Of a DNA stretch of 64,000 bases, positions 13,510 through 64,000 are shown one piece after another. Position numbers and translations under genes: made by a program. Positions within the stretch are counted from its first letter, which is position 1. Every line of letters starts with the position of its first letter. Source of the stretch: Macrostomum lignano (lineage: Eukaryota); the NCBI GenBank assembly GCA_002269645.1, contig NIVC01001035.1, forward strand, positions 186,001 to 250,000, given 5' to 3'. The notes under the pieces are model-generated. The model was given only the letters and a program-made list of their open reading frames with translations. It was not told the DNA's origin and searched no databases.

Positions 13510-13510
13510 G

Positions 13511-23030: not shown

Positions 23031-25417
23031 ATGTGCTTGAAGCAGGTCCTCACCTTCGAAGGGCAGGATCTGGTCGAGGACGCCCTCTGGTCACTGCGGC
23101 CTGGCTGGCTGGTCAAATTCAAAAGCGGCCACTCCTGGCAAACCGGGGTCTACATTGGCATCGGATTGCTGAGCATCTCCGAAAATGGCGAGTCGTTTGT
23201 CACGCCACGACAAGAGGAGTGTGATACTGGCAACACCAGTCCGCTGCATCACCTGGTATGTCACCTACCCAGGTGCAGTTCCAGCCGTGAAGGTGTGCTA
23301 GCAATCAAGGACTTTCGAGAATTGGCCGAGAACTCTGAATCCATTAGGGTTTTTGAGTGCAACTGCGACGAGGCTAAGCGGAAGAGCATCATTCGTGCCT
23401 GTCTGACGCGGCTGGGAGAAGTGCGAGTCAATTCCGCCGAACTTTTTGAGCACTTCTCTGCGTGTAGGAAGGGGCAGTGGAAAACAATTTTCACAAATGG
23501 CTTTACTCTGCTTTGCGACGGTTTTAAAAGTCTCATTGGGCAGAGGCCTGCCACTGGAACAGCAAATGACTTGTCATCGGATTTGTGAGTGGGTGAAAAA
23601 TTTTCCTAATCTGGCATCAACTTGGGTCTTTTTAAGATCGGTTTTCTGAGTTTCTGGTGGTGACATCAAAGTCTGAGTAGGACACTGACATCACCAGGGT
23701 CTCAAACATGTAAATGGTGCTTGGGTCATCAGGGGTAGTTTTATAAAGTGCCAAGGTTTCACCATCTTACGTGTACATTTTGCAATTTCGACTCACTAAT
23801 ATCACATGACTATAAGCGATAAACCAATTACAGGCACATCTTTCTGCTGGAAAACACATCTGACTGGGTTGACGCCATTTCTCCAGAAAGCCGCCAGCGA
23901 CTGAGCGACTTCTCTAGAGCGTTGCTGGTTTCACCAAATTATGAAACAGCAAACGGCTTTGAGACATTTCTAAGTTGGATTGCGGGATTTAAAAGTGACA
24001 GTCGTGGCATCGGGACGAAAGCCTTGACAACAACTGCGTCACACTATCTGCGTTCGTTTACCAGCGCCAGGATTTCGCCGAAGTCAAAATGGTCTGGCGC
24101 AGCAGTGCAGTTTGAGAGGCTTAACGACAGTCTACAAGGTACGACCATGATAGTGTGGGTAACGGGTGCAAATGTACATATATGTTTACTTAGCGGGTAA
24201 ATTGTACCCTCTCAACTCTCGTGCCAAACTACATGTACATGTACTGTAGCTACATGTAGCTAGCTGCGTTCGATGCCTTGAGGCTTGAGTCAACCACAAA
24301 CAAAGTGCGGGGTTGTGTGTGTGTGATCGTATCTTTGTCTTGCCACCTCGCTCCTGAACTGTAGCCCAGTGAAATAAATGCGTCAATATATTTAAGGTTC
24401 ATTTTTTACCATACATTAATTCGGCCTATAGTTGATTTTAAGAGCTCGATCATTTTGTCATCTGACATTTCAGGACTCGACTCTTTCTTTAACGAGCTAC
24501 TGAATAGCTCCACCAGAAGGTGACTAATGTTTTCAATAGCTACATGAAATTACATACCAGACATTGCGAGTATGCCATTAGTAAACTAACTTTGCACTTC
24601 TTGTACTCCTAACTTCAGCGAGGAAAATGCTGCAATTGCCGCTCCTGAGAGCGATACTCGCACTACCCGACGCAACCCTCCGTCTCTGGATTGCTACCCG
24701 GTAACGTCTCCGCAAGGATTCTGCGCGGTCATCAACATCAACAACTACGATGACAATACGAACCTTGGCCGCCGCTCCGGATCAGAGCAAGACGTTGCTC
24801 GCATCAGAGAGGTGTTCGGAAAGCTCAACTTTGTGATAGAAGTCAAAGAGGACTTGACGTCACACGAAATCGGCCGTTTTTTGACGAATTTAGCCCACGA
24901 CGAAAGGCTGGAACAGCACGGATGCTTCGTGCTCTTCTTGATGGCGCACGGCTCGAAGCGAGAAATCTTCGGTAGCGATGGAGAGACAATAGACTTAAGC
25001 TACATTGTCAAGTCATTTAGGTCCCCAATTTGCAAGGGCCTGCGAGGTAAGCCCAAGATCATCGTGATTCAGGCTTGCCGAGGCATGCGACTTCAATTCG
25101 GTCAGCGCGGCCCCTTGAGAGATAGCTCGTCGGATAATGGAGAGTTCGGGTGCTACTCTCCTAGGGGCAAAGACTTCTTGGTGTGCTTTGCAAGCGGCGG
25201 AGATACTCCGGCTTTTCGAGATGCAAATACCGGTTCCGACTATGTACAGGCACTGTGCCGCGAGGTTGAGGCGCATTACCAAAGTGAGCACATTGTGGAC
25301 ATTGTCACCCGCGTCAACAATGCAGTTTGGCGAGCTCCGGTGCAGCAGGGAGAATTGCAACTCTACACAGCTCCCGAGTTTACTAGCAGTCTCACGAAGA
25401 AGTACTACTTGAGCTAG
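23031..25417 (+). CDS. Gene A: catalytically dead LRAT-like domain fused to an intact caspase; exons 23031-23584 and 24619-25417 (450 aa)
   Basis: Phase-2 GTGAGT...TTCAG intron joins the exons in frame. Caspase has MAHG and QACRG. The LRAT H-box His is replaced by Gln (WQTGVYIG) and NNCEHF by ELFEHF. Confidence 0.82.
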
Positions 25418-26287
25418 TTGAGATTCAGCTTTATCAACTGGAAACTGATTTAATAAAAAACTACTGCTTTCCCTTCATAGTATTTGAAAGTACCTCCTTC
25501 AGCTAATTATGTTGATTTCTGAGTAATGTGAAGTTGAAAATTAAAATCCATTATCCAATTGAGCTTCATTTTGCCGTATTAACGCTAATTAGTTACCCGA
25601 TCAACTTGACTTGAACGCGTAGTTGATCTTTAAAAAGCAATGCGTTCTTGCTGTATGAAGCGTCTCTTATCAACTACTTAAGATTCACTAAATCATTACC
25701 GCTTTTAAAACAATGCCTGTTATTTTCATGTACGCTACAGTTTGTATTGTAACGCTACCCAGCTGAAAAAAATGCTTAGAACTTTTGTTGCTCCTTTTCT
25801 ACCGCTTTAAAAAAATTTATACATTTTTCCACAATATAATCACTGTATACTTTTGTAGATTATTTATCAAAAAATAACTTTGCACTCTTCCGTAGATCAC
25901 CTGATTTTGCATACGATGTTTTGTTTTTTGAAAAAAAATGTCTACTGAGCAGTTTCCGACGAGTCCACTTGGTCAATTGCCTTGAAAAGCAAAAATGAAA
26001 AAGAATTGTGCGTTTATCTGTTCAAAGACAAGACTATTTTTCTTGCTACAGAGGAATGAAATTCTGCTGTCCTATTGTAGTCGATGTCTGCATAGTTGGA
26101 CATTGTAAACAGCCAGTCCTGCATTGGTGCACTTGTGGCAAACTACGGCAAGTCCTTGGAATTGCCGTGGATTTTTCTTTTAAATTAAAGCATGCACACA
26201 GACTACTCAACTCATCTATCGACGCGTGTACGTTCGGTGAGTTTAAGACATGCGCTACTGCTAAGGCACTTTGCTAACTTTGAAAAA

Positions 26288-29597
<3,310 letters not shown>

Positions 29598-30307: not shown

Positions 30308-32051
30308 ATGTGCGTCGGATTCACCAACGGTTACAAAGACTTCCCGTACTGGAAGGTCAAGGAGGCCCTGGCCGCCATGACCCCGGGCTCGGCCGTCAGC
30401 TTCAACCGGATCGGCTTGTTCCACTTCGCCATCTACCTCGGCCTCGCCTGGCCCAAGGAGACCCTCGACGAGCCGATCCCGCTGGTGTGCCACTTCTCCG
30501 GCGACGCCAGCTCGGAGCCCATGGCCTCGGTGCGGCTGGACGACTTGCGCGAGGTGGTGCAGAACTCCACGGTGCGGGTGTACAAGTGCAGCTGCGAGCC
30601 GGCCAAGCGGATGCGGGTGGTCAGGGAGAGTCTGGCTCGGGTTGGCGAGGAGGGCTACAACCTGGTGACCAACAACTGCGAGCACTTCGTTCGCGACATC
30701 ATCAACAATAGGAAGTTCAGCTACCAGTCCTTCTGGACGTTTGCTGCGCCGCTGGTGCAGCTGCCCCGGCTGCTCATCGGAGCGCCCATCGGCGGATCCA
30801 TCGCTTCGTCGGCCTCGTTGAGCGCCTGCGTTGCCAGCAGTCTGACAAAATTCGCGTAAGACTTCATCAAACCCAGGGACAACTAAAACCCTGGGACCCA
30901 GGTTTTAGTTGTTCCTGATCAAACCGTTTGATTAAACGAGCTTAAACTATTCATTAGTGCTATCCATATACTAAAAATGATCTGTCGGTATATGTGTGTG
31001 TGATCGATTTTAGCAAAAGTGGCTCAACCGATTTTGTTCGAACTTGCACTGTTGCACTTGCACTTGATTAAACGAGCTTAAACTATTCATTAGTGCTATT
31101 AGTTACTAATAGCGATGGACGATAGAGATTCCAGGTGACATTAGATGACTTACTTACTTGACTTAGCTGCAGGGCGGTCCGAAGACGCAGCGGGGAGGCG
31201 AGCGTCGCTCATTCCGCTAGCCCCTGAGAAGTCCGCATAGGCTAGGGCACGGAGCCAGTCAGGGAGGTCTTCCGGCCCCGTCTGTAGCGTTGTCTTCAGT
31301 GGGGAAGACGGAGGCTCGTTTGGTAGCTCGGAGGAACTTGATGAGTCGTTGGATGTTCTCAGGCCGGCAAGCGTCGTCCAGAGACGGGTTGGGCCCGAGG
31401 TGGTTGAGCCGGTCTCGGTTGCAGGCCGGGCAGTAGCAGAAGAAATGCTTGGCGTCTTCGTTCTCGAAGTTGCAAAAGCGGCAGAGTTCGTTCCGTCGAA
31501 CGCCTCGGAGGAACCGTGGACGTCTGGCAAAGCAACCGTGACCTGTGAAGGTCATAGTGAAAGCGCGGATATCTTTTCGATTTTGGTTCAAAGGATTCTT
31601 CGCAGCTTGAGTGACGGGCAGGGCATGCCGCCCATTAGATGACAATCATGAGCCTTGTCTTTCTTTCAGAGCAAGACATTTATTGCCTCCCAACCGTCTC
31701 TGCAGCTCCTTAGGTCTCATCAATCCCGACATGGATCTCCTCGAGATCTCACTCTCGGGCTCCTCTGGTCTGTCAGCATCCGTTGACGTGAATCCCTGCT
31801 GCACCAAGGTGTACACTGGGCCAAACCAGAGCATCGAGCAGGAGCTGTACCACTGCCTCACCTGCGGCATCACCGGTAGCAGGGTCGTGTGCCGGGCCTG
31901 CGTGTTCATGTGCCACACCGACTGCGACACCAGGTGCTTCAATGACGGTCCAGGATTTTGCGACTGCCAGCACCAAATGTGCCTGGTCAGTTCGGAAGCA
32001 GCTCCATTCGACGAGCCCACTGAGTCTGCGGAATCTGTTGTAAATAGCTGA
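30308..32051 (+). CDS. Gene C: LRAT plus UBR-box-like zinc finger; exons 30308-30855 and 31706-32051
   Basis: FHFAIYLG, VCH and NNCEHF. Phase-2 GTAAG...GCAG intron. Exon 2 reads CTKVYTG..YHCLTC..VCRACVFMCH..FCDC, matching the UBR4/UBR7/FBXO11-type UBR-box pattern. Confidence 0.85.
30964..31063 (+). mobile_element. Short Helentron/HINE-like fragment flanked by a 36-bp direct repeat
   Basis: ATACTAAAAATG...GTGTGTGT...GGCTCAACCGATTTTG resembles non-autonomous Helentron 5' ends. A related reverse copy lies at ~33400-33530. Confidence 0.45.
31150..31632 (-). mobile_element. 5'-truncated LINE 3' end in the gene C intron
   Basis: 11-bp TSD CATTAGATGAC (31139-31149 and 31633-31643). (TAAG)n tail. 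Encodes TGHG...CRFCNFENEDAKHFFCYC, a LINE C-terminal CCHC region. Confidence 0.88.
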
Positions 32052-32684: not shown

Positions 32685-34271
32685 ATGTGCCTGGACTCAT
32701 TGGAGAGTCGCTGCGAGGGCGATGGTCAACTCTGTAGGGACTTCGGCACAACGGAGGCTGGATTGGCGCGAGCGCTCATCGAAGCATCGCCAGGCTCAAT
32801 CGTCAGCTTTGTGCTCCGGCCCAATCGATCATCTGGAGATCTGATCTGCCATCGACATTTCGGAATCTATCTTGGTCATGCATGGATTGCCAAGTACCAC
32901 CAGGCTCTGGTTTGCCACAGTTACAAAAATCGACTGACAGTGTCGAATTTTCGCGACTTGGCTGAGCTGTCAACGGAAATCCGAGTTTACAAGTGCGACT
33001 GTGACGATGACCGCGACCGCTTTGTTGCTGAGTGCTTCCGCCAGTACGGTAGCTCGCCTGAGGGTACCTGTCTCGCTAGTATCAAACGGATTGTTTCGCC
33101 TGAAAGCACGAAAGAGCCAACGGCTGTTACCAAAGGATGGTTCAAGCGACTGCTGTCGAGGTATGGACCATCGGTTCTCTCGAATTCTGGACTTTTTAAA
33201 TGGCGTCTTGGTGCTCCGGCGCTGCCGAAGACTGATGAACCGCATTGCGCTGTCCTCGACGGGCTGCTCGATTCACTGGCTGGCTTGGATGAAAACTGGT
33301 AAAGACTGAAGTGCAGTTGGATATCTATTTTCTGTTTTTTGTCTATGGTATTCTATGGGATTAATACATCCACTAGGTAACCTATACGATAAAAGCATTC
33401 AAGACCAGTAACACAAGTAAATCTATTGTATCTATTAAAACTTGTTTCATCAAAATTGGCCCAGTAGTTTCGGAGGAGATATGAAACGCACATTACATAC
33501 AAACAGCGCGTCACTTTTAGTATATTGAGTGTTCTCACACAGCCTTTTGCGACCTTACAGAACTACCTGAAGACGTACAACCTGTAGTCTTCAAGTGCCA
33601 AAAGTTTTGATTCGTCAATCTTTTCAGAGATCTATGGGGTCTTACCAAAATCGCATGCCGAAATTTGCCCGCATAAGATTTCCGAATGCCCTGAATATTT
33701 TCTATTTGGCATTAGCTACAGAGGGGGACACTCTGTATACAGGGGTGAGGGTCATTTACAGACTTTAGTAGCAACTACAAATTGAAATGATCCCTGGGAC
33801 TGCTGCTGGAAGGTTGCCAATAACCTTCTTTAGAAGGCAGGCATTCAGGCAGATACATGTAAACTTCCTGTCGTCAAAGTTTTGCAAAACGATCCACAGA
33901 GTCTTTCTTCTAAACCATTTCGCAGTCTCATCGGCCTACTGAGCTCAAAGTTGGACATGCTTGAGGTCACTCTACACAGACAGCAAGTGGTCAGCTCTGC
34001 CAGCCCTAGCACTGCCATCCGCATCAGCAATCGCTGCACTCGAGACTTCACGGGTGAGGATGCCCAGGCTCACCAGGAGTTGCACGAGTGCCTCACCTGC
34101 GGCATCCGCGACGATCAAGCGATCTGCAAGCGCTGCGCAGAAGTGTGCCACGCCAATTGCTGCACCCAGAGGCTCAACGTGGATAAAGCTCGAGAAGTGA
34201 CAGGGTACTGCGACTGTACACATGACTGCTCACCCGAGCTCAAGCAGGATTCCCATCGGAACCGATCCTAA
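32685..34271 (+). CDS. Gene D: divergent LRAT plus UBR-box-like finger; exons 32685-33298 and 33926-34271
   Basis: RHFGIYLG and VCH are kept. The NC motif has diverged to GTCLASI. Phase-2 intron. Exon 2 reads CTRDFTG..ECLTC..ICKRCAEVCH..YCDC. Confidence 0.8.
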
Positions 34272-35323: not shown

Positions 35324-38300
35324 ATGCTGCCTCCAGCTAAAAAGAAATCAAGAAAGCGAATACCTTCAGAAGTCTATGAAGACTTTATGATGGCCATTGT
35401 GACCAATGACACTGAAATTATTGACGAGTTCTTGAAGATTAAGCCACCACTCGACAAAAGAGTGTCATTTCTAGACGACAGTATGACACCCCTGACGCTC
35501 ACGTGTCTTCTCGGGAAGCCAGAAATTCTAAGAAAGCTAATTAAGGCCAACGCTGACGTCGACGTAAAAGAACTTAACGACACTTCGCCACTGTACGTTG
35601 CTGCTCAAGAAGGACACGACAAGATCGCGGACCTTCTAATTGAAGCGCAAGCGGAAATCGACTTCCAAAGCGCGGACGGGACTTCACCTCTTTACCTGGC
35701 TTCGCAGCACGGCCATCACAGAGTGGTGAGGTCGCTCATCGAAGCTCAGGCAAGTGTCGATTTACGAAGAAGCAACGGAGCATCGGCGCTGTGTATTGCG
35801 GCCCAGAACGGGCATCGGCTCGTGACCGACTTGCTGATCAGAGCTCAGGCGGATGTCAACATTCGGGCGGACAATAGCACAACACCTTTGTACATAGCTT
35901 CGCACAACGGCCACCATCTCATCGTTGAATTGCTGCTCAAGGCTCGGGCCGATCCAAACCTGCTACACTCTGACGGTACTTTTCCACTGTACGTTGCCGC
36001 TTACAATGGTCACTATCAAGTGGTTTCACTGATAGTCGATGCCGGCGCGGAAGTCAATCTGCGAGACAGTCAAGGCTGTTCCTCGTTGATCATCGCCTCA
36101 CAAAATGGTCACCGGCAAGTAGTAGATGTGCTCATTTCCGCAAACGTCGATGTCAATCTTCCAGCTAACAATGGCGCAACGCCGATCTACATGGCCTCGC
36201 AGGAAGGTCATAAGCAAGTGGTCGACGTGCTTATCAAAGCACAGGCTGATATAAACCTTTTAGCGAATGGCGATGCTTCGCCAATTTATACGGCAGCTCA
36301 GGAGGGTCACGACCAAGTGGTTGACTCCCTTATCCATGCGAATGCCGATGTCAATTTTCAGAGGAGCAATGGCCAATCGCTTCTATTTATTGCCGCGCAG
36401 GAGGGTCACGAGAAGGTTGTGGAATTGCTTCTGAAATCGGGCGCAGACCCCGACCTACCAACTGGCAACGGTTGGTTGCCTCTGCACGCAGCTTGCAAAC
36501 AAGGTCACCACATGGTCGCTGATCTTCTTATCAAAGCCCAGTCTGATATTAATCACTTGGCTCAAGGCAGCCTGTCGCCTCTGCTATTGGCTATTGAACA
36601 AGGTCACAGCAGAGTTGTAGAGCTACTCATCAAAGCGCAAGCCGAAGTCGACCTAACAATCTCAACAGGAGTATCCCTTTTCGAAGTGGCTAAAATGCTG
36701 GGTCATGACCGAGTGACAGCACTACTTCAGGAAGCAACCGCGAGTTCCACGGCGTCGTCTGAGACCCTTCAGGCAAACGAATTAAAGAATTCAAAGTAAC
36801 AAAGGGTTTTTTTATTTCGTCAACTACTTTGAAGTACTACTTATTTTAGATAGCAAAAGCTTAAAATTTACACTAATGTTACTCTTCAGACAAGCGCTAG
36901 AGGACGTTCAATTGAGCTTGGAACTAAACTCAACCCTTACTAAGGCAGGGTTTGTGAGCTCCCGAGCTGCAATGCAGAGCGTATTGGCTGACGTTCTTCA
37001 AGAGATTCTTCGAAAGCGATGGAATGGTGGCCAAATCTTCGTAGTTGGAAGCTACTCTGAAGGCTGGGGAAACAGTCTAAAAACGTTGGACGGCAGACCC
37101 GATGTAGAGTCCGACATAGACGTGATGAGGCTCATAGATGGGAGACTTTACCACCTGAATTACCGGTGCAACTGCTCCGAAGATGAGAAACTATTGGTGA
37201 ACTACGAGAATGGGCACATATTTTGTCCTGGATATGGTCTGTGCTAATTTGTTCATCATGTAAAAATCAACTTGCCTCACCGGTCTTAATGCGCCCGTTT
37301 ATGTTTGCTTTCAGCTTCAACTCCCGCGAACCCGACAACCGGCTCCAATCTGAGGCCAGCTGTGGACGAAGTGAGCGGCGTTCGGCTCTGCTGCTACCCC
37401 CTCATCGCACCTCTGCTTACGCAGAGACTCGAAGACTCCCAAATCCCCGGCTCGGTTTTAAGTGCTCTTCAACAGGAACTAACCTCGTCGCCATGTCACG
37501 TGGTACACGCCGCACCGCCCGGACACGCTGGTGAGCAGCTCCGGTTGAGCACAACTTTTTTAGAGAGGCGCCTGTTGCGAAGTCTCAGCACTCTACAAGG
37601 TCAGCTCTTTGTTACCATCAAGTACATAGTAAAAAAGGTCATTTGTCACAAAGAAGGCTTCAATGCGGCGGGTTTGAAGGCGTATCACATGAAAACAATT
37701 ACGTTTCGAATGCTCGAGCGAACACCAAGAGAGATCTGGAAGCCGGAGAACTTAGTATTCCTCATCAGAGAGTCCCTGCTCATGCTGATTAATGACGTGA
37801 GAAACGGCTGCACACCTCAGAATACAGATGGTCGAATCATGGATCACTTTTTCCTATGCGACGCCGCGCTCTACCTCAAAGGTGTCGATCGCAGCCAGTC
37901 GATGCTGCAGACTTTGGAAGCAACAATCCAAGTCTTGGAAGAAGTGACAGCGAATTTGCCTCAGTTTATACTGAAGTTTATAAAAAGTTTGAAACCAGTC
38001 AGCGACTCAGGAAGATTCTACTTTCATCCCTTCCTCATCTTGCCGTATCTTAACCAAAATCCCATTCCACTATCTGGGAGAATTGAGTACCACGAAATTT
38101 ACGATGTCGTCCGAAAATCATTGCTTTGCCTGACCCACGACGGCAGCAGCTATCAGTCGCAACTGTATCTCACAGAGATTATCGCTAGGCTACCAGACAG
38201 TGCCCGCACAACCCGTGAGGTTCTCAGAGCGCTGGCGTGTCTAAAGTTCGGATACAAGGACTCTGCCAAGAAGATAATAAAGTACACCAGGTCCTTCAAG

Positions 38301-38825
38301 GTGAGCCGAGGCTTTGATTTACAAGCGGAGGACCTTTTAGCTGCCGAAGCGACTCCGGAGAAAGTGTGGAATCATCTGAGAACTCAAGATTCTGCCTGGA
38401 AATTCAACTTTCATTTTGAGACGAGGCCAGAATTTCAGTTTCTTCCCGAGCTCTGGGCCGCCTGCTTCCCAACTCAGACGCTGAATTTTGACACCTGCTT
38501 TTACATCAACTTTGATGCCATGCTGCAAAGCATGCGCTTTCAACTGTTAGTGGACGAGGAGGAGACGACTGTCCAGTCTTGGATCCGTGATGTGGCCGGG
38601 CGGGAGGACGCCGACGAGCAGGAAGTGACGGTGGCGCTGCTCTGCTTGCGCGATGAAGCATTGTTCAAACCATTGCTGGACCGAGCGCAGTGGTTTCCGG
38701 CAGGAATTCCTAAGAGGATCCTTGAGGAGCTGAAGGCTAGATTTCGAGAGGACAATTGGAACGACTCTAGCCAATGGGGTCTTCAGCAGCTAAACCAAAT
38801 TTTAGAACGCTTGCTTCTTCGCTAA
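35324..38825 (+). CDS. Gene E: 13 ankyrin repeats plus a Mab-21/cGAS-like nucleotidyltransferase (cGLR); exons 35324-36795, 36890-37236, 37315-38825 (1109 aa)
   Basis: Ankyrin consensus (SPLYVAAQEGH) recurs 13 times. NTase GSYSEG...ESDIDVM, with a probable third Asp in VDEVSG. Mab-21 C-lobe motifs AYHMKTITF, WKPENL and DHFF. Both introns are phase-compatible. Confidence 0.85.
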
Positions 38826-43479: not shown

Positions 43480-44833
43480 ATGTGCGTTGGATTTCTAAAC
43501 GGCTACAAAGACTTCAAGCCGAAGCTGCTCAACGAGGCGATCGCCGCCGCAGTTCCCGGGTTCGCGGTCAGCTTCGACAGGATCGGCTTCTTTCACTTCG
43601 CCGTCTTCCTGGGCTGGGCCTGGCCCAAGGGCGGCGACTCGGAGCCCATCCCGCTGCTGTGCCACCTCTCCGGAGACGCCAGCACGAAGCCGATGGCGTC
43701 TGTTCGACTTGACGACTTCAGAGACATCGTCCAGAGCTGCACCATCCGAGTGTACAACTGCAAATTCAGCGCGAAAAAGAGATCCCAGGTGATACTGGAG
43801 TGTCTCTATCGAGTTGGCAAGATCGGTTACAACCCGCTGACCAACAACTGCGAGCACTTCGTCCGGGGAGTGATCTGCGGCGAGCGCGTCAGCTACCAGA
43901 CCCGCTGGATTCTGGCTGCCCCGATAGTGCAAGTGCCGCGCATCGTCGTCAGCACTGCGTTTCTGGGGGCCGCCACCTCCGCTGCTTCGTCCAGCTGCAT
44001 ATCGAAACTCGAGACTAAAAGGTGAGGGATCAAGGTTCTTTTACAGAATCACTACTAAATTTTTACTCTTCAATGGATTGCCTTTTATCAACCTCAAAAT
44101 TGAAACTGAACTTCACAAAGTTCGAAATTTTACATCGTCAACTTTTTTCAAGTTGTGAACTAGCGGAAGTGGCTGGAGTAGTGATTTCGAGATTGCGAAA
44201 GATTCTGCTTTTATGAGACGATGTGCAATCCACAAAAGTCATGGAGTTCAAATCATGGGGACCAAATAATGTTAGCTAAAGTATGCAGCTCTATCTTGGA
44301 CTTGATGACATTTGGATTCCAAACCCAAGTAGGTCACATGTTCGGAAGTGAAAAGATCTCTGAATATTTGAGTGTATTCGCCAGCTGTTATAATGTGCTT
44401 GTTAAGTGCGAGTTAGATCAGTACGTTTACATGAAAACCATTGCTATTCCGCACGAATATCTCATCAAGAAAGCAACTTGCAATCTTCATCAGGTCCCTA
44501 GGTCTTCTAAATCCAGAGATGGACCTGGTTGAAATCCTCGTATCAAACAAGGGCCTGAATTTGAAAGGCATCAGACTGAATGCCAGCTGCACAAAGGATT
44601 TTGATGGCTCCAATCGATTTCCGATGCAGACGCTTTACAACTGTGAGTTCTGCAACGGCAGCAACTCAATCGCTGTGTGCAAGCCCTGCTCGAAACTCTG
44701 CCATCCAACTTGTGGATCGCTAGAAGGCTCCGTGACCGAAGGTTCATGTCGTTGCAGCCACCTGTCCATCTCAAAAGCGGCAACACAAACGACTCAACAG
44801 ACTTTGAAGAGTTCAGGCACTTACACCCCATAA
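43480..44833 (+). CDS. Gene G: LRAT plus UBR-box-like finger; exons 43480-44021 and 44494-44833
   Basis: FFHFAVFLG, LCH, NNCEHF. GTGAG...TCAG phase-2 intron. Exon 2 starts SLGLLNPEMDL and continues CEFC..CKPC..CH..CRC. Confidence 0.87.
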
Positions 44834-46150: not shown

Positions 46151-47159
46151 CTAACGTTTCTTCCTCCTCTTGAAACGGCGAATCTCCAATTCACACAAAG
46201 CGTCAATAGAAGGATCATTGAATAGACCAAGAGCAGCAGCAGGCAGCTCAGGCTCATCGATCAGTTCAGCCGGTTCTTCGCTCTCCTGCCGGCCGTGACT
46301 GCATCGACACACGTCCGAAATGACGTAACTCACACAGTTGGTTAGGGAGCCCCCGTGGCACCCTTCCCTACAGGGCCTGCAGACTACTTGATTCGAACTG
46401 CTGTGGTAAAGTTCCTGCACAAAGCGAGCGTCCTTGCACGCAAAAAAGTCAGCAGTACATTTGGCGTATTTCTGAACAGTTGCACTGAGCCCGTTATTGT
46501 CAACCATGATCTCCAGCAGGTCCATCAGAGGATCGAACAGGCCGTACGAACTTCGATTTGAAAATATGTTTTTAAGTGTCCAGAAGGATAACATTAGGAA
46601 AATTTATTTTAATTTTGACTCACCCATTCGTTAAGCTAATTTTGCAGCACTTCATTGCAAGGGCCGACGAAGATGAGCTCCAGAAGACAGTACCGAGAGG
46701 GAGTCTTGGAATCTGTAGTACAGCAAGGCGAGCTTGGTAGCTCTTCTTTTCTCCTTTTCCATTGATAACCTCGCGAACAAAATGTTCGCAGTTATTCTTC
46801 ATTAGATTGTAGTTGGTCTCTCCGACTCGTTTTAGGCAGTCCAGCACTACTCGAGCTCGCTTCTCGGCGCTACACTTGCAGTGGAAAACTCGAATGGGAG
46901 AAAGTCCGACAACGTCGCGGAAGTCATCGATTCGAACGGAAACTCTTGCATTCGAAGCAACTTCGCCCGAGAAGTGACACAGGAGAGGCACCGGGTCCGA
47001 TTGCCCACCTCTGGGGAAGGCCCAACCTAGGAAGATGGCGAAGTGGCCAAGAGCGACTCGATTAAAGCTGATGGCGGAGCCTGGGACCATGGCTTTCAGA
47101 GCGTCATCGGCCCGCGATGCTGAAAAATCGTCGTAGCCATTTGTAAAACCGACACACAT
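46151..47159 (-). CDS. Gene H: LRAT plus degenerate UBR-box-like finger; exons 47159-46624 and 46550-46151
   Basis: GHFAIFLG, LCH, NNCEHF. 73-bp phase-2 intron. The finger lacks the first CxxC (YHSSSN). Confidence 0.82.
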
Positions 47160-47688: not shown

Positions 47689-48671
47689 ATGTGTGTCGGC
47701 TTTACAAACGGCTACTCGGACTTTGCGTCGGACAGAGTCGAAGAAGCGATCGTTGCCGCCGTGCCCGGGTCCGCGGTCAGCTTCAACAGGATCGGCTTCT
47801 TTCACTTCGCCGTTTTCCTAGGCTGGGCCTGGCCCAAGGGCGACGACTCGGAGCCCATTCCGCTGCTGTGCCACCTATCCGGAGACGCCAGCACAAAGCC
47901 GATGGCGTCTGTTCGACTTGACGACTTCAGAGACATCGTCCAGAGCTGCACCATCCGGGTGTACAACTGCAAATGCAGCGCGAGCAAGAGATCTCAGGTG
48001 ATCCTCAATTGCCTCTATCTAGTTGGCAAGGCTGGCTACAATCCGCTGACCAACAACTGCGAGCACTTTGTGAGAGAAGTGATTTGCGGTCAGAGCACCA
48101 GCTATCAGGCCGTTTGGACTCTTGCAGCTCCGTTAGTTCAGCTGCCGCGAATTCTTCTGGGTAGCGCTGTAGTCGGGGCCGCCACTTCGTCTGCTTCATC
48201 GAACTGCGCATCCAAATTTGAGGAGAATCGGTAAATGTTTAGAAATTCTTTACTTTTTCTGCATCCTGATGCATGGTTATTCATTGCCTGCTTTCCCATT
48301 TCAGATCACTGGGACTTCTTAATCCGGAAAGAGATCTAATAGAGATTATATTGTCAAAAAAGCATGGTTTACATTTACAAGGCGTCAAGTTGAATTCTGT
48401 CTGCACAAGGGAATTCGGAGGCTTAAGCACCTTTCCAATGCAGTTTCTCTACACTTGCAGAAGCTGCAGCGGCAGTGAAAAGATGGCGGTGTGCCGGCCA
48501 TGTCAGAAGCTTTGCCATGCAAAATGCATTTTTCGAACTGGAATTGTGTCTGAGAATGTGTGCCGGTGCTCTCACGCCATGAAATCAGAGGCAGTGCAGC
48601 TGCCTCTGCAACTGGATCTTCAAGAAGAATCTACTTCATCAGTCGAAGGCAACGAGGGTGGATCTTGTTAG
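47689..48671 (+). CDS. Gene I: LRAT plus UBR-box-like finger; exons 47689-48230 and 48305-48671
   Basis: Intact His/His/NC motifs. 74-bp phase-2 intron. Finger CRSC..CRPC..CH..CRC. Transcribed divergently from gene H. Confidence 0.87.
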
Positions 48672-49739: not shown

Positions 49740-51323
49740 GAGAGACTGATGGCTACTCCAACCAGAGGGATTTTCTAGCTTCCATCGACTGCAGCGCATC
49801 TTTGCTTGGGTGTTGAGTTTCATTCAAAACTGTCAGAAGGAAAAGTATCAGCAAAGCAGCGGTGGTGGATGACCTCGAGGAGGTGAAGGAGCGTTTAGTA
49901 AGGTTTTTAGCTCAGGAAGAAGCGTTCAAGGCGGATGCAGTGACTGAGAAGAAGCTGCGGTGCTTGCAGTCGCTACGTGATGCGGCAGGAGTTCTACGAG
50001 TGGATGGCCGGTTGAAATTCAGGCCACTGGCGCCATTTGCAGCAAGACATCTGGCTATATTGCCGCGAAAGAATTGGATCACCAAGCTGATTATTTCACA
50101 ATATCACGAGCAGCAGAGCCACGGTGGGATAAACCAAACGCTGGCGGCGTTTTCAGCCAATTATCTGTGCTCGGGAAGCTATTCGCGAGTGGGAGGTCGA
50201 ATGTGCTGTGTGCAAGAGAGAGAAAGCTCGTCCCGTCGCGCAACAGATGGCTCCATTGCCTGATGTCCGCGTCGAAGGCTCCTTAAAAGCCTTCACAAAC
50301 GTAGCCATCGACATGGGAGGGCCGTTCGTCACTATTCAAGGCCGATTCAAGAAGAGGCAAAAATTCTATTTGGCGCTGTTCACATGCCTCGAGACACGAG
50401 CGGTACACCTCGAAATGACCTATTGCCTTGACGCGGACTCATTTTTGAATGACTTCTACCGAAATGTGAACCGGCGTGGCTTACCCAAGGCTATGTATTC
50501 TGACAACGGCGACAACTTTGCCACAGGTGCAGATGAGCTCCGACTTCTGGAGGAGCTGGACAGGACCAATGTCAGTCGCGAGACATCCAGGCAGCGAGGC
50601 AGCGAGTCAAGTGGAACTTTTAGCCGCCAGCTGCCCCACACTTTGGTGGAGCGCACGAGGTGATGATTATGGGTGACGCCGATGTCACCGATGAGGAGCT
50701 TCAGTCGGCGAGCACCGGAGCGGAGGCGCTGATCAACTGGCGCCCCATCACCTACCAATCGACGAATTCGAGAGACGAGGAGCCACTATTGCCAAATCAT
50801 TTCCTGCACGGTCAGGCTGATGGAAAATTTGCGCCAGATGTGTCCGACGATGTCGCGGCTGATCCGAGGCGGTAGTGGCGGCGCGTTCAAGAACTCGTGA
50901 GGCACGTCTGGCGACGCTGGATGCACGAGTGGTGGCCAGGGTTGCAACCGAGGGTCAAGTGGGCGGCGGTCGCTTTCATAAGACCAAAATTTCGCAACGC
51001 CAAAAACAACTGCATGGTCTTTCACAAGACCGAAACCTCATAAGACCGAAATTTCACATCGTAAAAAACTTAATGCAACAAGGACCATGCAGAATTTTCC
51101 GCGTTGTGAAATTTCGGTCTTATGAAGCCCCCCCCCCGTGGCGAGATGTGCAGCCAGGTGGTGTCGTCCTCGTCATCAAAGCAGACTCGCCGCGGGGACA
51201 CTGCCCGTTGGGACGAGTAGTCGAGGTCTACCCGGGTCCAGACAACCGAGCTCGGGTGGCCAGGGTCAGGTCGGGGGAACGGTATTCGTTCGATCTGTGA
51301 GCAAGCTGTGTTACCTCGAGTGA
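49740..51323 (+). pseudogene. Decayed BEL/Pao LTR-retrotransposon integrase region
   Basis: Frameshifted fragments QQMAPLP, FTCLETRAVHLE, YSDNGDNF, LPNHFLHG and the BEL C-terminal DUF5641-type PLGRVVEVYPGPD. Confidence 0.9.
50963..51137. mobile_element. MITE inserted in the BEL/Pao relic
   Basis: TIRs CTTTCATAAGACCAAAATTTCGCAACGC and GCGTTGTGAAATTTCGGTCTTATGAAG. GTGG is duplicated at 50959-50962 and 51138-51141. Removal restores RVKW-RDVQ. Confidence 0.8.
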
Positions 51324-53039: not shown

Positions 53040-54074
53040 TTAAATGGTTGTCTTACAGCATACAGAGGAAGAACGTCTCCTTCTTCTCAAACTGAAAATT
53101 TCCACTTCCCACAAGGCGTCGATAGCCGGTGTATTGAATAGACCAGGAGGAGCAGAGGGCAACTCAGGCTCATCGATCAGTTCAACCGGTTCTTCGTTTT
53201 CCTGTCGGCCGTGACTGCACCGACACACGTCCGAAACGACGTAGCTGAGAGAGTTGGTTCGAGAGTTCCCGTAGCACTCTTTCCTACAGTGCCTGCAGAC
53301 TACTTGATTCGAACTGCTGTGGTAAAGTTCCTGCACAAACCGAGCGTCCTTGCGCGTAAAAAAGTCAGCAGTACATTTAGCATATTTTTTAGCAGTTGTT
53401 TTGAGCCCGTTATTGTCAACCATGACCTCCAGCAGGTCCATCAGGGGATCGATCAGGCCGTACGAACTGCGATTCGAAAAGGGTTCTAAAAGTGACCAGG
53501 AAGATAGCGTAAGGAAAAATTTTCTAATTAAGCCTCACCCATTCATTATGCCAAATTCGGAGCCCCTTGATGAAACAGCCGACGAAGATGAGCCCCAGAA
53601 GACAGTACTGAGAAGAAGTCTTGGAAACTGTGGCAGAGCAAGGCGAACTTGGTAGCTCTTCTTTTCTCCTTTTTCATTGATAACCTCGCGAACAAAATGT
53701 TCACAGTTATTTTTTATTAGATTGTAGTTGGTCTCTGCAACTCGTTCTAAGCACTCCAGCACTACTCGAGCTCGCTTCTCGGCGCTACACTTGCAGTGGA
53801 AAACTCGAATGGGAGAAAGTCCGACAACGTCGCAGAAGTCATTGATTCGGACGGAAACTTTTGGATTCGAAGCAGCTTCGCCGGAGAAGTGACACAGGAG
53901 AGGCACGGGGTCCGATTGCCCACCTCTGGGGAAGGCCCAACCTAGGAAGATGGCGAAGTGGCCAAGAGCGACTCGATTAAAGCTGATGGCGGAGCCTGGG
54001 ACCATGGCTTTCAGAGCGTCATCGGCCCGCGATGCTGAAAAATCGTCGTAGCCATTTGTAAAACCGACACACAT
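53040..54074 (-). CDS. Gene J: LRAT plus degenerate UBR-box-like finger (paralogue of H); exons 54074-53539 and 53466-53040
   Basis: First 66 aa are identical to gene H. NNCEHF intact. Canonical GTGAG...GCAG phase-2 intron. Confidence 0.85.
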
Positions 54075-55559: not shown

Positions 55560-56539
55560 ATGTGCGTCGGCTTTACAAACGGCTACTCGGACTTTGCGTC
55601 GGACAGAGTCGAAGAAGCGATCGTTGCCGCCGTGCCTGGGTCCGCCGTCAGCTTCAACAGAATCGGCTTCTTTCACTTCGCCGTTTTCCTGGGCTGGGCC
55701 TGGCCCAAGGGCGACGACTCGGAGCCCATTCCGCTGCTGTGCCACCTCTCCGGAGACGCCAGCACGAAGCCGATGGCGTCTGTTCGACTTGACGACTTCA
55801 GAGACATCGTCCAGAGCTGCACCATCCGGGTGTACAACTGCAAATGCAGCGCGAGCAAGAGATCTCAGGTGATCCTCAATTGCCTCTATCTAGTTGGCAA
55901 GGCTGGCTACAATCCGCTGACCAACAACTGCGAGCACTTTGTGAGAGATATGATTTGCGGTCAGAGCACCAGCTATCAGGCCGTTTGGACTCTTGCAGCT
56001 CCGTTAGTTCAGCTGCCGCGAATTCTTCTGGGTAGCGCTGTAGTCGGGGCCGCCACTTCGTCTGCTTCATCGAACTGCGCATCCAAATTTGAGGAGAATC
56101 GGTAAATGTTGAGAAATTGTTTACTTTTTCTGCATCCTGATGCATGGTTATTCACTGCCTGCTTACCCATTTCAGATCACTGGGACTTCTTAATCCGGAA
56201 AGAGATCTAATAGAGATTATATTGTCAAAAAAGCATGGTTTACATTTACAAGGCGTCAAGTTGAATTCTGTCTGCACAAGGGAATTCGGAGGCTTAAGCA
56301 CGTTTCCAATGCAGTTTCTCTACACCTGCAGAAGCTGCAGCGGCAGTGAAAAGATGGCGGTGTGCCGGCCATGCCAGAAGCTTTGCCATGCGAAATGTAT
56401 TTTTCGAACTGGAATTGTGTCTGAGAATGTGTGCCGGTGCTCTCACGCCATGAAATCAGAGGCAGTGCAGCTGCCTCTGCAACTGGAAGAGTCTACTTCA
56501 TCAGTCGAAGGCGACGGCTCTCTCTCATCTTCTTGTTAG
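55560..56539 (+). CDS. Gene K: LRAT plus UBR-box-like finger (near-identical to gene I); exons 55560-56101 and 56176-56539
   Basis: Same motifs and intron as gene I. Confidence 0.87.
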
Positions 56540-57969: not shown

Positions 57970-58009
57970 CCGATGCATTTCGTCCATTTGCATTAGGACA
58001 TCGTCAGGG
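57970..58009 (-). ncRNA. Candidate minimal type-I hammerhead ribozyme (Penelope-like element type)
   Basis: Minus strand CC-CUGACGA-U-GUCC-loop-GGAC-GAAA-UGCA-UC-GG: conserved core, stem II and a palindromic helix III. Confidence 0.7.
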
Positions 58010-58963: not shown

Positions 58964-60013
58964 ATGTGCGTTGGCTGGACTAACGGCTACAGAGACTTCG
59001 AATCTGTCGAATCTGCTTTGAAAGCCATGACTCCAGGCTCGGCCATCAGCTTCAACAGAATTGGCTTGTATCACTTTGCGATCTACTTGGGCCTAGCTTT
59101 TCCCAGGGGCGGGAATTCGGGGCCGATTCCTCTGATCTGCCACCTCTCAGGTGGTGCCAGCACGCAGCCAAAAGCATCCGTTAGACTGGATGACTGCAGA
59201 GCCGTTGTGCAGAATTCTACTATTAGAGTGTACTGCTGCAGTTGCAGTGAGAGCAAAAGGGCACGAGTGATCTGGGAGTGCCTCTGGAGAGTTGGCGAGG
59301 AAGGGTACGACCTGTTCTTTAAAAACTGTGAGAGCTTTGTGCGCTATGTGATCAACGGGGTATCCGTCAGCTATCAATCTCTTTGGACTGCGGTGGTACC
59401 ATTTATTCAGATTCCCCGGTTTATTATCGGAGGAATCTCCGGAGGATCATCCTCTTCGTTGGCCTCATCAAGCTGCGCATCGTACTGCTTAGACAATTTG
59501 TAAGCTTGTGTGACGCATGTTGGTAATGGATAAATAATCAGCGGTCCCAGTGCGTGACAACGATTGTCTGGCGAGCGCCGGTAGGCGCGAGCCATAGACA
59601 AATCGTTGTCACGTGATGCGACCGCTGATTCTTTGCATTGTTTTTCTGTTTGACGATCCTACAGACAATGCATTGTTTGTAGCAATGGATTGTTCTGCAC
59701 TAAAAATGTAAATAATGATCGTCAAATTGCTAAACAATGAGCATTTTATGCTAAAAAGCTGAGCATTTTACTACGTCTATTGACTATTGAGAGACTATTG
59801 ACTACTTCTTTCTGTACTTTAATTTATTTCGCAATTTAAAGACACATCCGAAAATCTTTCAGAGACTACGGACTGATGGACCCCGAGGGTGATATGCTCT
59901 TGATTTCGGTCTCGAGTAGCGGCCTGCAGGCATCTGTAAAAGCTTTCCCCTCTTCGTATTTTTTTCGACTCGCTGAATTTGCTACATTTCTTATGGAGAG
60001 TTTTTCAGACTGA
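58964..60013 (+). CDS. Gene L: LRAT with a truncated second exon (no zinc finger); exons 58964-59499 and 59863-60013
   Basis: YHFAIYLG, ICH, KNCESF. Phase-2 intron. Exon 2 DYGLMDPEGDMLLISVSSSGLQASV is homologous to the start of the finger exons, then stops. Confidence 0.78.
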
Positions 60014-62236: not shown

Positions 62237-64000
62237 ATGTCCCGCAAGCACTGCCAGAGCTGTGGCTTCAAGTTCGATGAATCCTGGACAGCCCACTGCT
62301 CCAGGTGCGACACGACTTTCGACTTCAACGGGGACGTCAGCAATGCCCTGTGCAAGTCGTGCGGCCAGGAGGCCTTCATAATGCAGGACGAAGTGATGGA
62401 AATTTGCAAGTTCTGTCTCAGAGCTCTAGAGGCAAGTAAATTTCAAAGATAATTTATGCTCAAAACCATTTTAATGTGTCTGCTTAGCACTTAACCGTCA
62501 ACTTGAATGCCCTGCAGACTGGAGAAGAAGGCAGAAAAAATGAAGCCACTGGAACTTCCTGTGCGTCAGACAAACCGGAATCTGGACAGAAGAATGACGA
62601 ATTCACATCCGATGTAAGTTGCAATGAGGTACAGATTTTATTTGGGTTTTAAAACTGAGCGTTTACAGAAGCTTTAACAAATTACACTCTGCATGCGCTA
62701 ATTCACTCTGTTATCACGAACTCTTACTTCAGAACGACCAAGACGAACTCTGGAGATGCGTGGGCTGCGTATGCGGCAACCAAGACCCTCACAGTTTCAA
62801 ACTAAGCACATGCAAATGGCCAACCAAATCTTATTACTGTCTGGACTGCAGAGAGCCGTACAGCGCTTTCATTTGGGACACCGAACTACGCTGGGACCAG
62901 TGCCCCAGGTGCAATGGTGACAAAGTTCAGGTTGACAAAATTGCAACGGGAGGTACCATGATTGAATGCCAAAATTGTTCTAGTAAAATCTCAAAGCAGA
63001 GATTCGATTTGCTACATCAAGAGGTGAAAGATAAGTGCGAGAATGAAGAGAGAATAAAAGATGGACAGAAACAGCTAAATGAGACTTTCGAGTGCCAATA
63101 CTGCGGTTCTGCTCAGGTTCAATTTGTACTCAGCGAGACCGAAGGCAAGCCGTGCGTGCTGCAACAGTGCGGCACTTGCAACAAAACAAAAATTCTATTA
63201 GCTTGGGACAAAGAAAATGACCAATTTGAAACTGCTGCAGACGACGAGAAAGACAAACAGAGCGACAAGAAAATAGCTGCGATTCCAGAGAAATATAAAA
63301 AGCTGTCAAAGTGCTGCGGAAACTTCGCCAGCCTCCATCCGGTAGAAGGGGATCCCGACGATGACCTGCTCGTGTGCGATCAGTGCGATCAAACTATCAG
63401 TCTAAGAAGCTTCGATGATTGCCAAATCCCGCAAACAGTCTCGGCCCTCCGACGTGCGGTCAAGGGCCGGTTCTCCAGAGGCAAAATGGGGCGCCCGTAT
63501 GCCTGTGTCAAGGTTAGCGACATAGACGAGCTGAAGCCGGCCGACCAGCTTGACTTTCGGAGGTCTTTGTACTCGCACCACGCTATAGTGGAAAAGACAC
63601 TCCCCGACTCCAAGGAAGTTCAGGTTATCGAATATACTGGCGAGTCAAACAGGCCAACTATTCAGGCCTTTTTGAATCAGCTGCCAACAAAGGCTTGCAT
63701 AGCAGAGAGCACTTTAAAGCTTCAAGACATTGTAAAATGCATGCACAGAGTTGACTATCACAGTCTAGACTGCTTCCACCCGAAAACTGTGCTGGAACGG
63801 GCGAAGAAGCGAGTCGGAGAGAAACAGTACCACGTCGTGGGAAGCAACTGCGAGCACTTCAGCAACTGGGCCAAAGCCAATGTAGCATTGTCCCGTCAGG
63901 TAAAGAAGAAGCAGAAATGGGCTCTGAAGAAGCTCGGCCGCTGTGTGACTAGGATTACGGACATCGGGGATAGGCTTCCGAAGGACGGATCGAGCAGGGC
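62237..64000 (+). CDS. Gene M (runs off the window): multiple CxxC zinc ribbons plus a classical LRAT/PLAAT domain; exons 62237-62431, 62518-62613, 62733->64000
   Basis: The open frame from 62733 reads ...ELKPADQLDFRRSLYSHHAIV...AKKRVGEKQYHVVGSNCEHFSNWAK. The first intron is GC-AG (GAG/GCAAGT). Confidence 0.85.

Follow-up and report, generated by a model that had tools for sequence, protein, structure and literature searches.

A tandem array of LRAT-fusion genes in Macrostomum lignano, probably a single lineage-restricted family evolving by birth and death

Within the 64,000-nucleotide stretch of Macrostomum lignano DNA analyzed here (the window), the region from 23031 to 64000 is probably a tandem array, shaped by birth-and-death evolution, of one gene family restricted to the M. 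lignano lineage. The region holds 12 LRAT-fold genes, eight UBR-type zinc-finger exons, two caspase exons and one ANK-Mab21/cGLR gene. These counts agree with those of a first-pass annotation of the same DNA, as do the domain identities that it assigned (LRAT/PLAAT-type Cys-His enzymes, an active and a pseudo caspase, UBR-type fingers and an ANK-cGLR-like nucleotidyltransferase), and its statement that no housekeeping gene is visible among the array genes also held between 23031 and 64000. The only non-family coding sequence in this region is an LTR-retroelement integrase fragment (49862..51300, forward strand; Integrase_H2C2 and DUF5641 in Pfam), and the left edge is adjoined by a gene of syntaxin type, the SNARE domain of which lies at 22260-22472 (E=1e-19). 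Sequences of LRAT, UBR and caspase type had been described as interleaved components of a module; they are mostly exons of fusion genes belonging to one tandemly duplicated family, so that duplication alone explains their co-occurrence.

Three types of gene make up most of the array, namely eight two-exon LRAT-UBR-box fusions, two LRAT-caspase fusions and one LRAT gene with a short tail; the LRAT exon comes first in each, opening with Met-Cys, and the part 3' of it varies accordingly. Every finger gene, and likewise g1 and g11, has a GT-AG phase-2 intron at the equivalent position. Spliced reading frames are uninterrupted, with canonical splice sites, in g2, g11, the cGLR gene and each of the finger genes. 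Six of the finger genes lie on the forward strand: g3 (30308..32051; exons 30308-30855 and 31706-32051), which encodes 297 aa from Met-Cys and for which the annotation of assembly copy L001 gives an LRAT protein of 315 aa; the divergent g4 (32685..34271; exons 32685-33298 and 33926-34271), for which the splice model is less certain; g5 (40311..41838; exons 40311-40849 and 41469-41838; 302 aa), matched by public proteins P0002 and P0003; g6 (43480..44833; exons 43480-44021 and 44494-44833; 293 aa); g8 (47689..48671; exons 47689-48230 and 48305-48671; 302 aa), which has a phase-2 intron of 74 nt and is 97% identical over its full length to P0001 (303 aa); and its duplicate g10 (55560..56539; exons 55560-56101 and 56176-56539; 301 aa), 98% identical to g8 across the LRAT exon. 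The reverse strand carries g7 (46151..47159; exons 47159-46624 and 46550-46151; 311 aa), identical to P0005 when compared by eye, and its duplicate g9 (53040..54074; exons 54074-53539 and 53466-53040; 320 aa). The second exon of g11 (58964..60013, forward; exons 58964-59499 and 59863-60013) is truncated, retaining the conserved starting motif and lacking the zinc finger. The twelfth gene, g12 (62237..64000, forward), is a zinc-ribbon protein in which several N-terminal zinc-ribbon motifs precede a classical C-terminal LRAT domain; the window stops within this gene, which at full length in L003 encodes 620 aa.

Both LRAT-caspase genes are on the forward strand. In g1 (23031..25417), which is unannotated in the public assembly, an LRAT-like pseudo-enzyme exon (23031-23584) precedes an active-type caspase exon (about 24620-25417). 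In g2 (26288..29597) an intact LRAT exon (about 26288-26848; the public annotation uses an upstream ATG at 26192) is followed by two middle exons (about 27766-27940 and about 28029-28106) and then a pseudo-caspase exon (28872-29597). The first intron of g2 contains huge trinucleotide microsatellites. The counterpart of g2 in assembly GCA_002269645.1 is P0006 (539 aa, PF04970+PF00656), and the same pair of domains occurs within one protein in P0007 and P0008.

Pfam LRAT (PF04970) was matched above its gathering cut-off by nine of the 11 N-terminal LRAT exons, and these nine and g12 scored 35-50 bits relative to a cut-off of 24.3. The two other exons, at 23031 (g1) and 32685 (g4), were recognizable through their paralogues only (tblastn E=2e-8 and 1e-4, respectively). 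The domain in g12 was found at E=4e-13 in the L003 copy, and its HHAIV...SNCEHF core is present in the window itself. Alignment of ten family sequences, comprising seven window genes and three public proteins, showed the catalytic H39, H62 and C124 to be invariant, as are C61 and the N-terminal M1-C2. Departures from the catalytic pattern were seen in g1, where the catalytic His is replaced by Thr and the catalytic Cys by Phe, and in g4, the LRAT domain of which is probably inactive because the NCEHF motif has degenerated to TCLAS. Behind the LRAT domain lies a moderately hydrophobic segment (residues 144-163; Kyte-Doolittle mean 1.5) that is borderline as a transmembrane helix.

The eight Cys-rich second exons are paralogous. 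Singly, they scored 17.6-23.2 bits with Pfam zf-UBR (PF02207), under its cut-off of 25.2 (E 7e-5 to 4e-3), and three of the eight had no zf-UBR match in Pfam. The family profile matched the UBR box of UBR4 (E=6e-7), the Cys/His zinc ligands of the two falling in register, and it also matched FBXO11 and UBR5. Zinc ligands are kept in six of the eight genes, the first CxxC pair being missing from g7 and g9. In the representative library, one of the nearest relatives having the finger alone carries 20 repeats of Pfam zf-UBR. Confidence in the AlphaFold model of an LRAT-finger protein is low (pLDDT 48), and fold-level statements about these proteins are therefore based on sequence profiles.

The two caspase exons matched Peptidase_C14 at E=2e-32 and 1.5e-32. 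The g1 caspase has the MAHG His and QACRG, as in active caspases, and its nearest solved structure is caspase-3 (E=5e-34); in g2, QACRG has become QTSQK, as expected of a pseudo-caspase. Loss is thus reciprocal, g1 combining a dead LRAT domain with a live caspase and g2 a live LRAT domain with a dead caspase. Pro-domains of ANK or kinase-like type are known from flatworm caspases through a paper that reports no further unusual platyhelminth pro-domain, does not contain the term LRAT and reports FADD to be absent from flatworms (PMC11463336).

Searches for homologous proteins returned relatives of which every one with a named source came from Macrostomum lignano, and when 1.84 billion representative proteins were searched with a profile, LRAT and finger were combined in two of the 150 best matches examined, both from M. 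lignano. Judged from these sequence searches, the LRAT-fusion family appears almost confined to this species. The first-pass annotation was not aware of a described system of this composition; the LRAT-UBR-box and LRAT-caspase fusions do appear to be new domain architectures, and the ANK-cGLR architecture had already been described (Li et al., 2023).

Turnover within the array is evident from a segmental duplication of 3.4-4.4 kb, the copies of which (45903-49342 and 52815-57212) carry g7+g8 and g9+g10, respectively, and are separated by the retroelement fragment. In two other assembly copies, L002 and L003, this segment is present once; copy number varies between haplotypes. Paralogues in the array share 29 to 98% identity, one member has lost its finger, and independent contigs of the assemblies carry the array genes with 92-99.5% identity. 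Pairwise dN/dS ranged from 0.08 to 0.56 for the LRAT core and the finger in pairs with unsaturated dS, and values above 1 were confined to the short linker in two pairs; in the comparison of g6 with g8, dN of the finger was about three times that of the LRAT domain. Taken together, the difference in copy number between haplotypes and the pairwise dN/dS below 1 support birth-and-death evolution under constraint. The first-pass annotation had proposed birth-and-death evolution and called for a dN/dS analysis; the former is supported by the single-copy state of the segment in L002 and L003, the spread of paralogue identities and the loss of a finger, and the latter gave values below 1 in both LRAT core and finger.

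Since the genes share an LRAT first exon and a conserved phase-2 intron, are intact and have dN/dS below 1, the array probably grew by local duplication and exon swapping, with no recruitment of separate defense components. Membrane rupture based on PLAAT is established (PMC12017856). By analogy with PLAAT enzymes, the LRAT module may act as a membrane-associated phospholipase/acyltransferase, anchored via the hydrophobic segment and possibly also via an acylated Cys2. In the caspase genes it would be a long pro-domain in place of CARD or DED, serving to gather an effector-type caspase at membranes, and g1 and g2 could heterodimerize and regulate each other in the manner of caspase-8 and cFLIP. 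In the products of the finger genes, the box of UBR type might bind a peptide or an N-terminus and so direct or gate the lipid-modifying domain. It is plausible, though unproven, that the array acts in immunity or regulated cell death.

The lineage-restricted family might also have no part in defense, its members being intracellular proteins of lipid remodeling or cell turnover that expanded in a highly duplicated genome. Examples of such functions would be organelle clearance, or the renewal of tissues and germline in a flatworm that regenerates. PLAAT enzymes do have non-immune roles such as organelle degradation, caspases function in tissue turnover, and a region rich in repeats and retroelements favors duplication. 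Furthermore, the array proteins begin with Met-Cys-Val-Gly-Phe or similar, unlike a secretion signal, which makes secreted digestive or seminal roles unlikely, and intracellular roles of a housekeeping type may apply. Nevertheless, eleven or more paralogues with presence/absence variation are more typical of families driven by conflict, and the C-terminal recognition domains diverge fast, as the finger of g6 relative to g8 illustrates; we consider a purely non-defensive family unlikely.

A more specific reading, which we regard as speculative and quite improbable, is that the LRAT family forms a flatworm-specific toolkit for regulated cell death, in which a PLAAT-type pro-domain stands in for CARD/DED and UBR-box sensors recruit membrane-destroying LRAT activity. 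If this were so, the eight UBR-box paralogues would sense new protein N-termini, either ends generated by caspases or pathogen proteases or the proteins' own invariant Met-Cys after removal of Met and oxidation or arginylation of Cys, with or without input from the embedded cGLR.

The ANK-cGLR-like gene (35324..38825, forward strand; exons 35324-36795, 36890-37236 and 37315-38825; in-frame GT-AG introns) encodes 1109 aa comprising about 12 ankyrin repeats, a nucleotidyltransferase (NTase) core, the helical bundle of Mab21 type and, at the C-terminus, a conserved extension of about 330 aa. The ankyrin repeats were recognized at E=7e-85 and the NTase part is weak in Pfam; the latter is, over about 400 aa, 38% identical (E=2e-79) to the curated M. 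lignano cGLR PAA86972.1, which is construct no. 89 of Li et al., 2023 (PMC9980059). The active-site spacing (V-V-G53-S54, 20 residues, D75-I-D77-V, 55 residues, V-D133-E) is nearly invariant in the family and follows the cGLR motif of the same authors (h[QT]GS X8-20 [DE]h[DE]h X50-90 h[DE]h) with two deviations, Val for Gln/Thr before GS and Glu after the third Asp. The family profile matched cGAS in the PDB at E=5e-4, and hhalign to mouse cGAS gave E=9e-6 in the helix bundle only. The AlphaFold model has a mean pLDDT of 62, with the NTase core below 50, and with this low-confidence model as query the top eight Foldseek matches were MAB21L1, cGLR, cGAS or MB21D2 (E=0.015-0.18). In M. lignano the ANK-cGLR family is dispersed and comprises at least 32 sequence clusters; members have been catalogued and screened as cGLRs, and ANK fusion is a known cGLR architecture (Li et al., 2023; PMC9980059).

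An integrated immune module with shared regulation had been proposed for the locus, in which a nucleotide signal from the ANK-cGLR triggers LRAT-caspase proteases and LRAT membrane-attack effectors. Consistent with this, the NTase retains the cGLR catalytic motif (GS, DxD and third Asp), caspase and PLAAT-type domains are typical of death and membrane effectors, the copy number of the array varies as in many immune gene families, and the cGLR lies on the same strand as its neighbors, 1-1.5 kb from the LRAT genes on either side, an association retained in L001. However, L001 is the same locus, 92-98% identical, and not an independent event. No LRAT, finger or caspase sequence was found within 10 kb of any of five paralogous ANK-cGLR loci (L004, L005, L006, L008 and L009), nor was a cGLR found within 10 kb of the paralogous LRAT-caspase locus L007 or the foreign LRAT homologue L010. 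Moreover, Pfam and PADLOC gave no domain known for cyclic-nucleotide binding (STING, SAVED or CARF-like) in the LRAT proteins, immune cGLRs are reported missing from most flatworms, and three M. lignano cGLR rows of the supplement table do not bear the note that singles out the 15 active enzymes selected for follow-up (PMC9980059). Because the paralogous cGLR and LRAT-caspase loci are without these partners, the linkage, seen at one locus only, is probably incidental, and the ANK-cGLR most likely came to lie in the array by chance or local insertion. The linkage noted by the first-pass annotation is not recurrent at the loci compared, and the region differs from a defense island, which is recognized by recurrent co-localization at independent loci. 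Given that the M. lignano genome measures ~760 Mb, we estimate roughly that the prior chance of one of some 50 family members falling within an interval of ~40 kb is only ~0.3%, and the linkage, at its single locus, may on that account be non-random. An integrated module seems to us very doubtful on this evidence.

That the array consists mostly of decaying pseudogenes or is an assembly or annotation artifact is extremely unlikely: LRAT catalytic residues are gone from g1 and g4, the caspase Cys from g2 and one CxxC pair from g7 and g9, and g1 is unannotated, but the spliced frames listed above are intact, dN/dS is below 1 in LRAT core and finger where dS is unsaturated, and independent contigs carry the same genes.

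Compared with known systems, the lineage-restricted array is not a new kind of system, despite its new domain architectures. Its likeness to prokaryotic defense islands and CBASS (operons of CD-NTase and effector) is superficial, an NTase standing beside phospholipase-like and protease-like genes; unlike in those systems, the co-localization does not recur, PADLOC gives ankyrin repeats only, the putative effectors have no nucleotide-sensing domain, and the genes are eukaryotic, spliced and born by tandem duplication. With animal cGLRs the window gene shares the GS...DxD...D motif, the Mab21 helical bundle and the ANK fusion, and it differs in the Val before GS and the long C-terminal extension. 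Relative to the UBR boxes of N-recognins (UBR4, UBR5 and FBXO11 type), the array fingers match the zinc ligands of UBR4, whereas the second His of CHxxH is Cys, the same chain has no E3 ligase domain, single fingers score below the PF02207 cut-off and g7 and g9 are short of one CxxC pair. The array proteins share with PLAAT/HRASLS and LRAT enzymes (PF04970, NlpC/P60 superfamily) the two His and the NCEHF Cys, their family profile matches the structures of PLAAT4/RARRES3 and PLAAT3, and a hydrophobic segment behind the catalytic domain is common to both; past this segment the array proteins extend into a UBR-type finger or a caspase, and the Met-Cys N-terminus is invariant in a family found almost only in M. 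lignano. Among caspases with long pro-domains other than CARD/DED, the g1 caspase is effector-like, with catalytic His and Cys present, and the pro-domain of g1 and g2 is an LRAT enzyme domain. Finally, CFLAR adjoins CASP8/CASP10, and as in the active-pseudo pair of caspase-8 and cFLIP, g1 has a tandem pseudo-caspase neighbor, g2, with which it may heterodimerize.

tblastn searches of the array (23031-64000) with one copy per exon type resulted in the identification of 11 LRAT exons, 8 Cys-rich finger exons, 2 caspase exons and one gene combining ankyrin repeats (ANK) with an NTase domain. Pfam confirmed LRAT in 9 of the 11 LRAT exons, Peptidase_C14 in both caspase exons (E about 1e-32) and the ankyrin repeats of the ANK-NTase gene (E=7e-85). 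Individual fingers score under the Pfam zf-UBR cut-off; a profile of the LRAT-finger family matches the solved UBR box of UBR4 (E=6e-7) as well as FBXO11 and UBR5, and its LRAT half matches PLAAT4 and PLAAT3. The twelfth LRAT gene is of another kind: it starts at 62237, is truncated by the end of the window, and carries zinc ribbons at the N-terminus with the LRAT domain at the C-terminus. The locus therefore holds eight LRAT-UBR-box genes (g3-g10), two LRAT-caspase genes (g1 and g2), one LRAT gene with a short tail (g11), one zinc-ribbon-LRAT gene (g12) and one ANK-cGLR (cGAS-like receptor) gene. The counts in the first-pass annotation (12 LRAT, 2 caspase, 8 UBR-like and 1 ANK-Mab-21) were all correct, and its domain identities hold.

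LRAT, finger and caspase sequences in the array belong, as exons, to predicted fusion genes. Every one of the eight finger exons follows immediately 3' of a same-strand LRAT exon, and in 8 of 8 pairs the GT donor overlaps the stop codon of the LRAT frame, a conserved motif, S-[LY]-G-[LM]-x-[ND]-P, comes right after the AG acceptor, and joining is in phase 2, with uninterrupted spliced products of 293-320 aa. The gene model is supported for g8 by database protein P0001 (303 aa, 97% identity over the full length) and for g7 by a match to P0005, which has no record as a called gene. The g4 splice model may be slightly wrong and was not matched as an exact window protein, while in g11 the donor and the beginning of exon 2 are retained and the finger is missing. 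Both caspase exons come last in genes of LRAT-X-caspase layout; P0006 (539 aa, PF04970 and PF00656) is the annotated counterpart of g2, and the LRAT-caspase paralogues P0007 and P0008 are located elsewhere in the genome. A middle exon was looked for in g1 and none was identified. The first intron of g2 (26850-27750) is filled by very long trinucleotide microsatellites that read as poly-Tyr, poly-Thr and poly-Leu frames. AlphaFold modeling of the LRAT-finger protein g3 from a 9-sequence alignment gave a pLDDT of 48.5, too poor for a fold search.

Examination of catalytic residues showed that the neighboring genes g1 (23031-25417) and g2 (26288-29597) are reciprocal pseudo-enzymes. The LRAT site of g1 is lost (His to Thr, Cys to Phe) and its caspase domain, closest to caspase-3 and caspase-7 (E=5e-34), keeps the His and QACRG; g2 has an intact LRAT domain and a replaced caspase Cys (QTSQK). 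In the unlinked paralogue P0007 both domains are intact. Across the LRAT-finger family two His and the Cys of NCEHF are invariant, as is a Met-Cys start; the LRAT motif of g4 is degenerate, and the g7 and g9 fingers are without one CxxC pair. All 11 N-terminal-LRAT genes begin with Met-Cys, mostly as MCVGFTNGY (at 23031, 26288, 30308, 32685, 40311, 43480, 47689, 55560 and 58964 on the forward strand, and at 47159 and 54074 on the reverse), and the same start occurs in the paralogues P0004 and P0007 and in a homologue on a foreign contig, L010 (9749). One may speculate that Cys2 is an acylation or lipidation site or a Cys N-degron, the latter option being of note in view of the UBR-type box found in these proteins. 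N-degrons are what UBR boxes read.

Macrostomum lignano is a free-living flatworm of the Macrostomorpha, and close relatives in each protein search came from this species only. Three contigs of GCA_002269645.1 are collinear with the window, one over 16279-39767 (L001, 92-98% identity) and two over 45445-64000 (L002 and L003, 95-99.5% identity), and the window is therefore read as a known M. lignano locus in another haplotype, homeologue or assembly version. The first 14,000 positions (1-14000) are retroelements, among them by inspection a non-LTR retrotransposon ORF of 1353 aa with endonuclease and reverse transcriptase (3492-7553, minus strand) and a Ty3/gypsy-like gag-pol of 1656 aa and 415 aa (7363-13496, minus strand). 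The left border of the array is a syntaxin-type gene (18614-22472), the nearest ordinary housekeeping gene, whose last exon (22260-22472) encodes a SNARE domain (E=1e-19) and a C-terminal membrane anchor. Minisatellite arrays with long repetitive open frames on both strands occur at 18800-19800, 20130-20710 and 40894-41236, two of them within introns of the syntaxin-type gene. Within 23031-64000, a retroelement integrase fragment (49862-51300, plus strand) was the sole other coding sequence seen beside the array genes. Past the right end of the window, L003 carries another LRAT gene (19758-20611, MCVGFTNGYQDF...) whose LRAT domain is interrupted by an intron filled with microsatellites, and the array therefore extends beyond position 64000.

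The g7 and g8 unit, a head-to-head pair (45903-49342), is duplicated as g9 and g10 (52815-57212) at 86-92% identity, with the integrase fragment lying between both copies. L002 and L003 each have one such unit ahead of g11, whereas the window has two, so that copy number differs between haplotypes or homeologues; the number of copies thus varies either inside the species or from one subgenome to another. Pairwise Nei-Gojobori dN/dS was 0.08-0.56 in the LRAT core and in the finger among pairs without saturated dS, and values above 1 were confined to the short linker in two pairs, with the finger changing approximately 3 times faster than the LRAT core (g6 versus g8, dN 0.335 versus 0.112). The dN/dS values and the copy-number difference support birth-and-death evolution under purifying selection and argue against a pseudogene graveyard. 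The birth-and-death component of the first-pass annotation held up.

A profile search of 1.84 billion representative proteins returned 681 matches at E up to 0.001, and among the best 150 of these LRAT and finger were combined only in two M. lignano representatives. The eukaryotic contig L010 carries an LRAT gene starting MCVGFTNGY with the same exon-2 motif, and the family therefore extends to one further organism or more. Outside Macrostomum, the closest relatives of the finger include proteins of 2 to 20 tandem UBR-type boxes in ENA assemblies (P0063, P0083, P0050 and others), P0063 having 20 Pfam zf-UBR repeats.

The ANK-cGLR gene encodes a predicted 1109 aa in three exons with canonical introns. 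Pfam scores its NTase region only weakly; the region shares 38% identity (E=2e-79) with M. lignano PAA86972.1, which appears as construct no. 89 in the 140-enzyme cGLR screen of Li et al. (PMC9980059). The motif required by those authors is present (GS, 20 residues, DIDV, 55 residues, VDE), and in hhalign the helical bundle matches mouse cGAS at E=9e-6, with a profile search of the PDB giving E=5e-4. The NTase region modelled by AlphaFold reached a pLDDT of 62 with a disordered core; the best eight Foldseek matches to this poor model were all MAB21L1, cGLR, cGAS or MB21D2, at E-values that were not significant. We considered 'SPCHVVHAA' as the third catalytic acid site, which would make the enzyme inactive, and rejected it: when aligned with PAA86972.1 and mouse cGAS, this stretch pairs with the 'PFYLVPK' strand of cGAS, and the third Asp is D133 in 'PAVDEV'. 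Following the Mab21 bundle, a region of ~330 aa (37900-38825) is conserved among M. lignano cGLR paralogues and is predicted with fair confidence to be helical; no known family matched it. Ankyrin-cGLR fusions are among the architectures listed by Li et al. (PMC9980059), and the M. lignano rows examined in their construct table bear no mark for the 15 active enzymes chosen for follow-up. Given the similarity to PAA86972.1 and this known architecture, the gene is placed by sequence in an already described group. In M. lignano this family comprises 32 or more clusters at 90% identity, the nearest relative of the window copy being only 56-62% identical.

The locus had been read as a candidate animal 'defence island' in which an ANK-cGLR sensor, a caspase protease and an LRAT membrane-attack effector form one module. 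Five paralogous cGLR loci were scanned by tblastn at the DNA level, each with 10 kb of flank on either side; LRAT, finger and caspase sequence was found at 0 of 5. Annotated neighbors there include an HLH factor, a serine carboxypeptidase, a VWA protein, ribosomal protein S30 and myosin, and one locus (L005) holds three tandem cGLR copies (4775-5823 on the minus strand, 12196-15140 and 26625-29418), so the cGLR family also grows by local duplication. P0007 is solitary, flanked by an inositol phosphate kinase gene and by one with a faint match to C-type lectin, and no cGLR or caspase lies near the LRAT homologue on L010. The sole repeat of the cGLR-LRAT association is L001, the same locus, and one evolutionary event therefore accounts for all the linkage seen. 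Pfam found no nucleotide-sensing domain in the LRAT proteins, and PADLOC gave ankyrin-repeat matches only. The sensor-protease-effector module is not supported, nor is an 'animal defence island' as a new kind of system. Co-regulation of the array genes is possible but likewise unsupported; literature searches, among them for the Mlig gene identifiers and in the supplement of the microbiome paper, yielded no expression data for these genes. The observation is confirmed and its interpretation partly supported, in domain identities and birth-and-death evolution and not in the module. For genome scans, this is a caution that an apparent multi-domain defence-like 'island' may consist of a single fusion gene's duplicated exons together with a neighbor present by chance.

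By analogy with PLAAT enzymes, which reach membranes via a C-terminal hydrophobic segment and can rupture organelles (PMC12017856), the N-terminal LRAT module is probably a membrane-associated phospholipase/acyltransferase. As a long pro-domain in the caspase genes, it would bring an effector-type caspase to membranes. Caspase-8 and cFLIP are regulated by heterodimerisation, and the adjacent live/dead g1-g2 pair suggests, by analogy, regulation of the same kind. For a UBR-type box without a ligase domain, the simplest role we infer would be to bind peptides or N-termini and so target or gate the enzyme.

A survey of lophotrochozoan caspases described ANK and kinase-like pro-domains in flatworms and no further unusual platyhelminth pro-domain, and the term LRAT is absent from the paper (PMC11463336). 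Searches for LRAT with caspase (Peptidase_C14), LRAT with UBR and Macrostomum with LRAT returned nothing relevant in the searchable literature. Both the LRAT-caspase and the LRAT-UBR-box architectures therefore appear to be undescribed, as new variants of known domain families. The interest of the locus lies in these fusions and the reciprocal pseudo-enzyme pair and not in the clustering itself. If functional, the fusions would widen the range of animal wiring between proteases and membrane-damaging enzymes, and would bear on the organisation of cell death in flatworms, which are reported to be without FADD (PMC11463336). They would then exemplify a PLAAT/LRAT-class enzyme serving as the long pro-domain of a caspase, and a UBR-type recognition finger joined to a lipid-modifying enzyme in place of a ubiquitin ligase.
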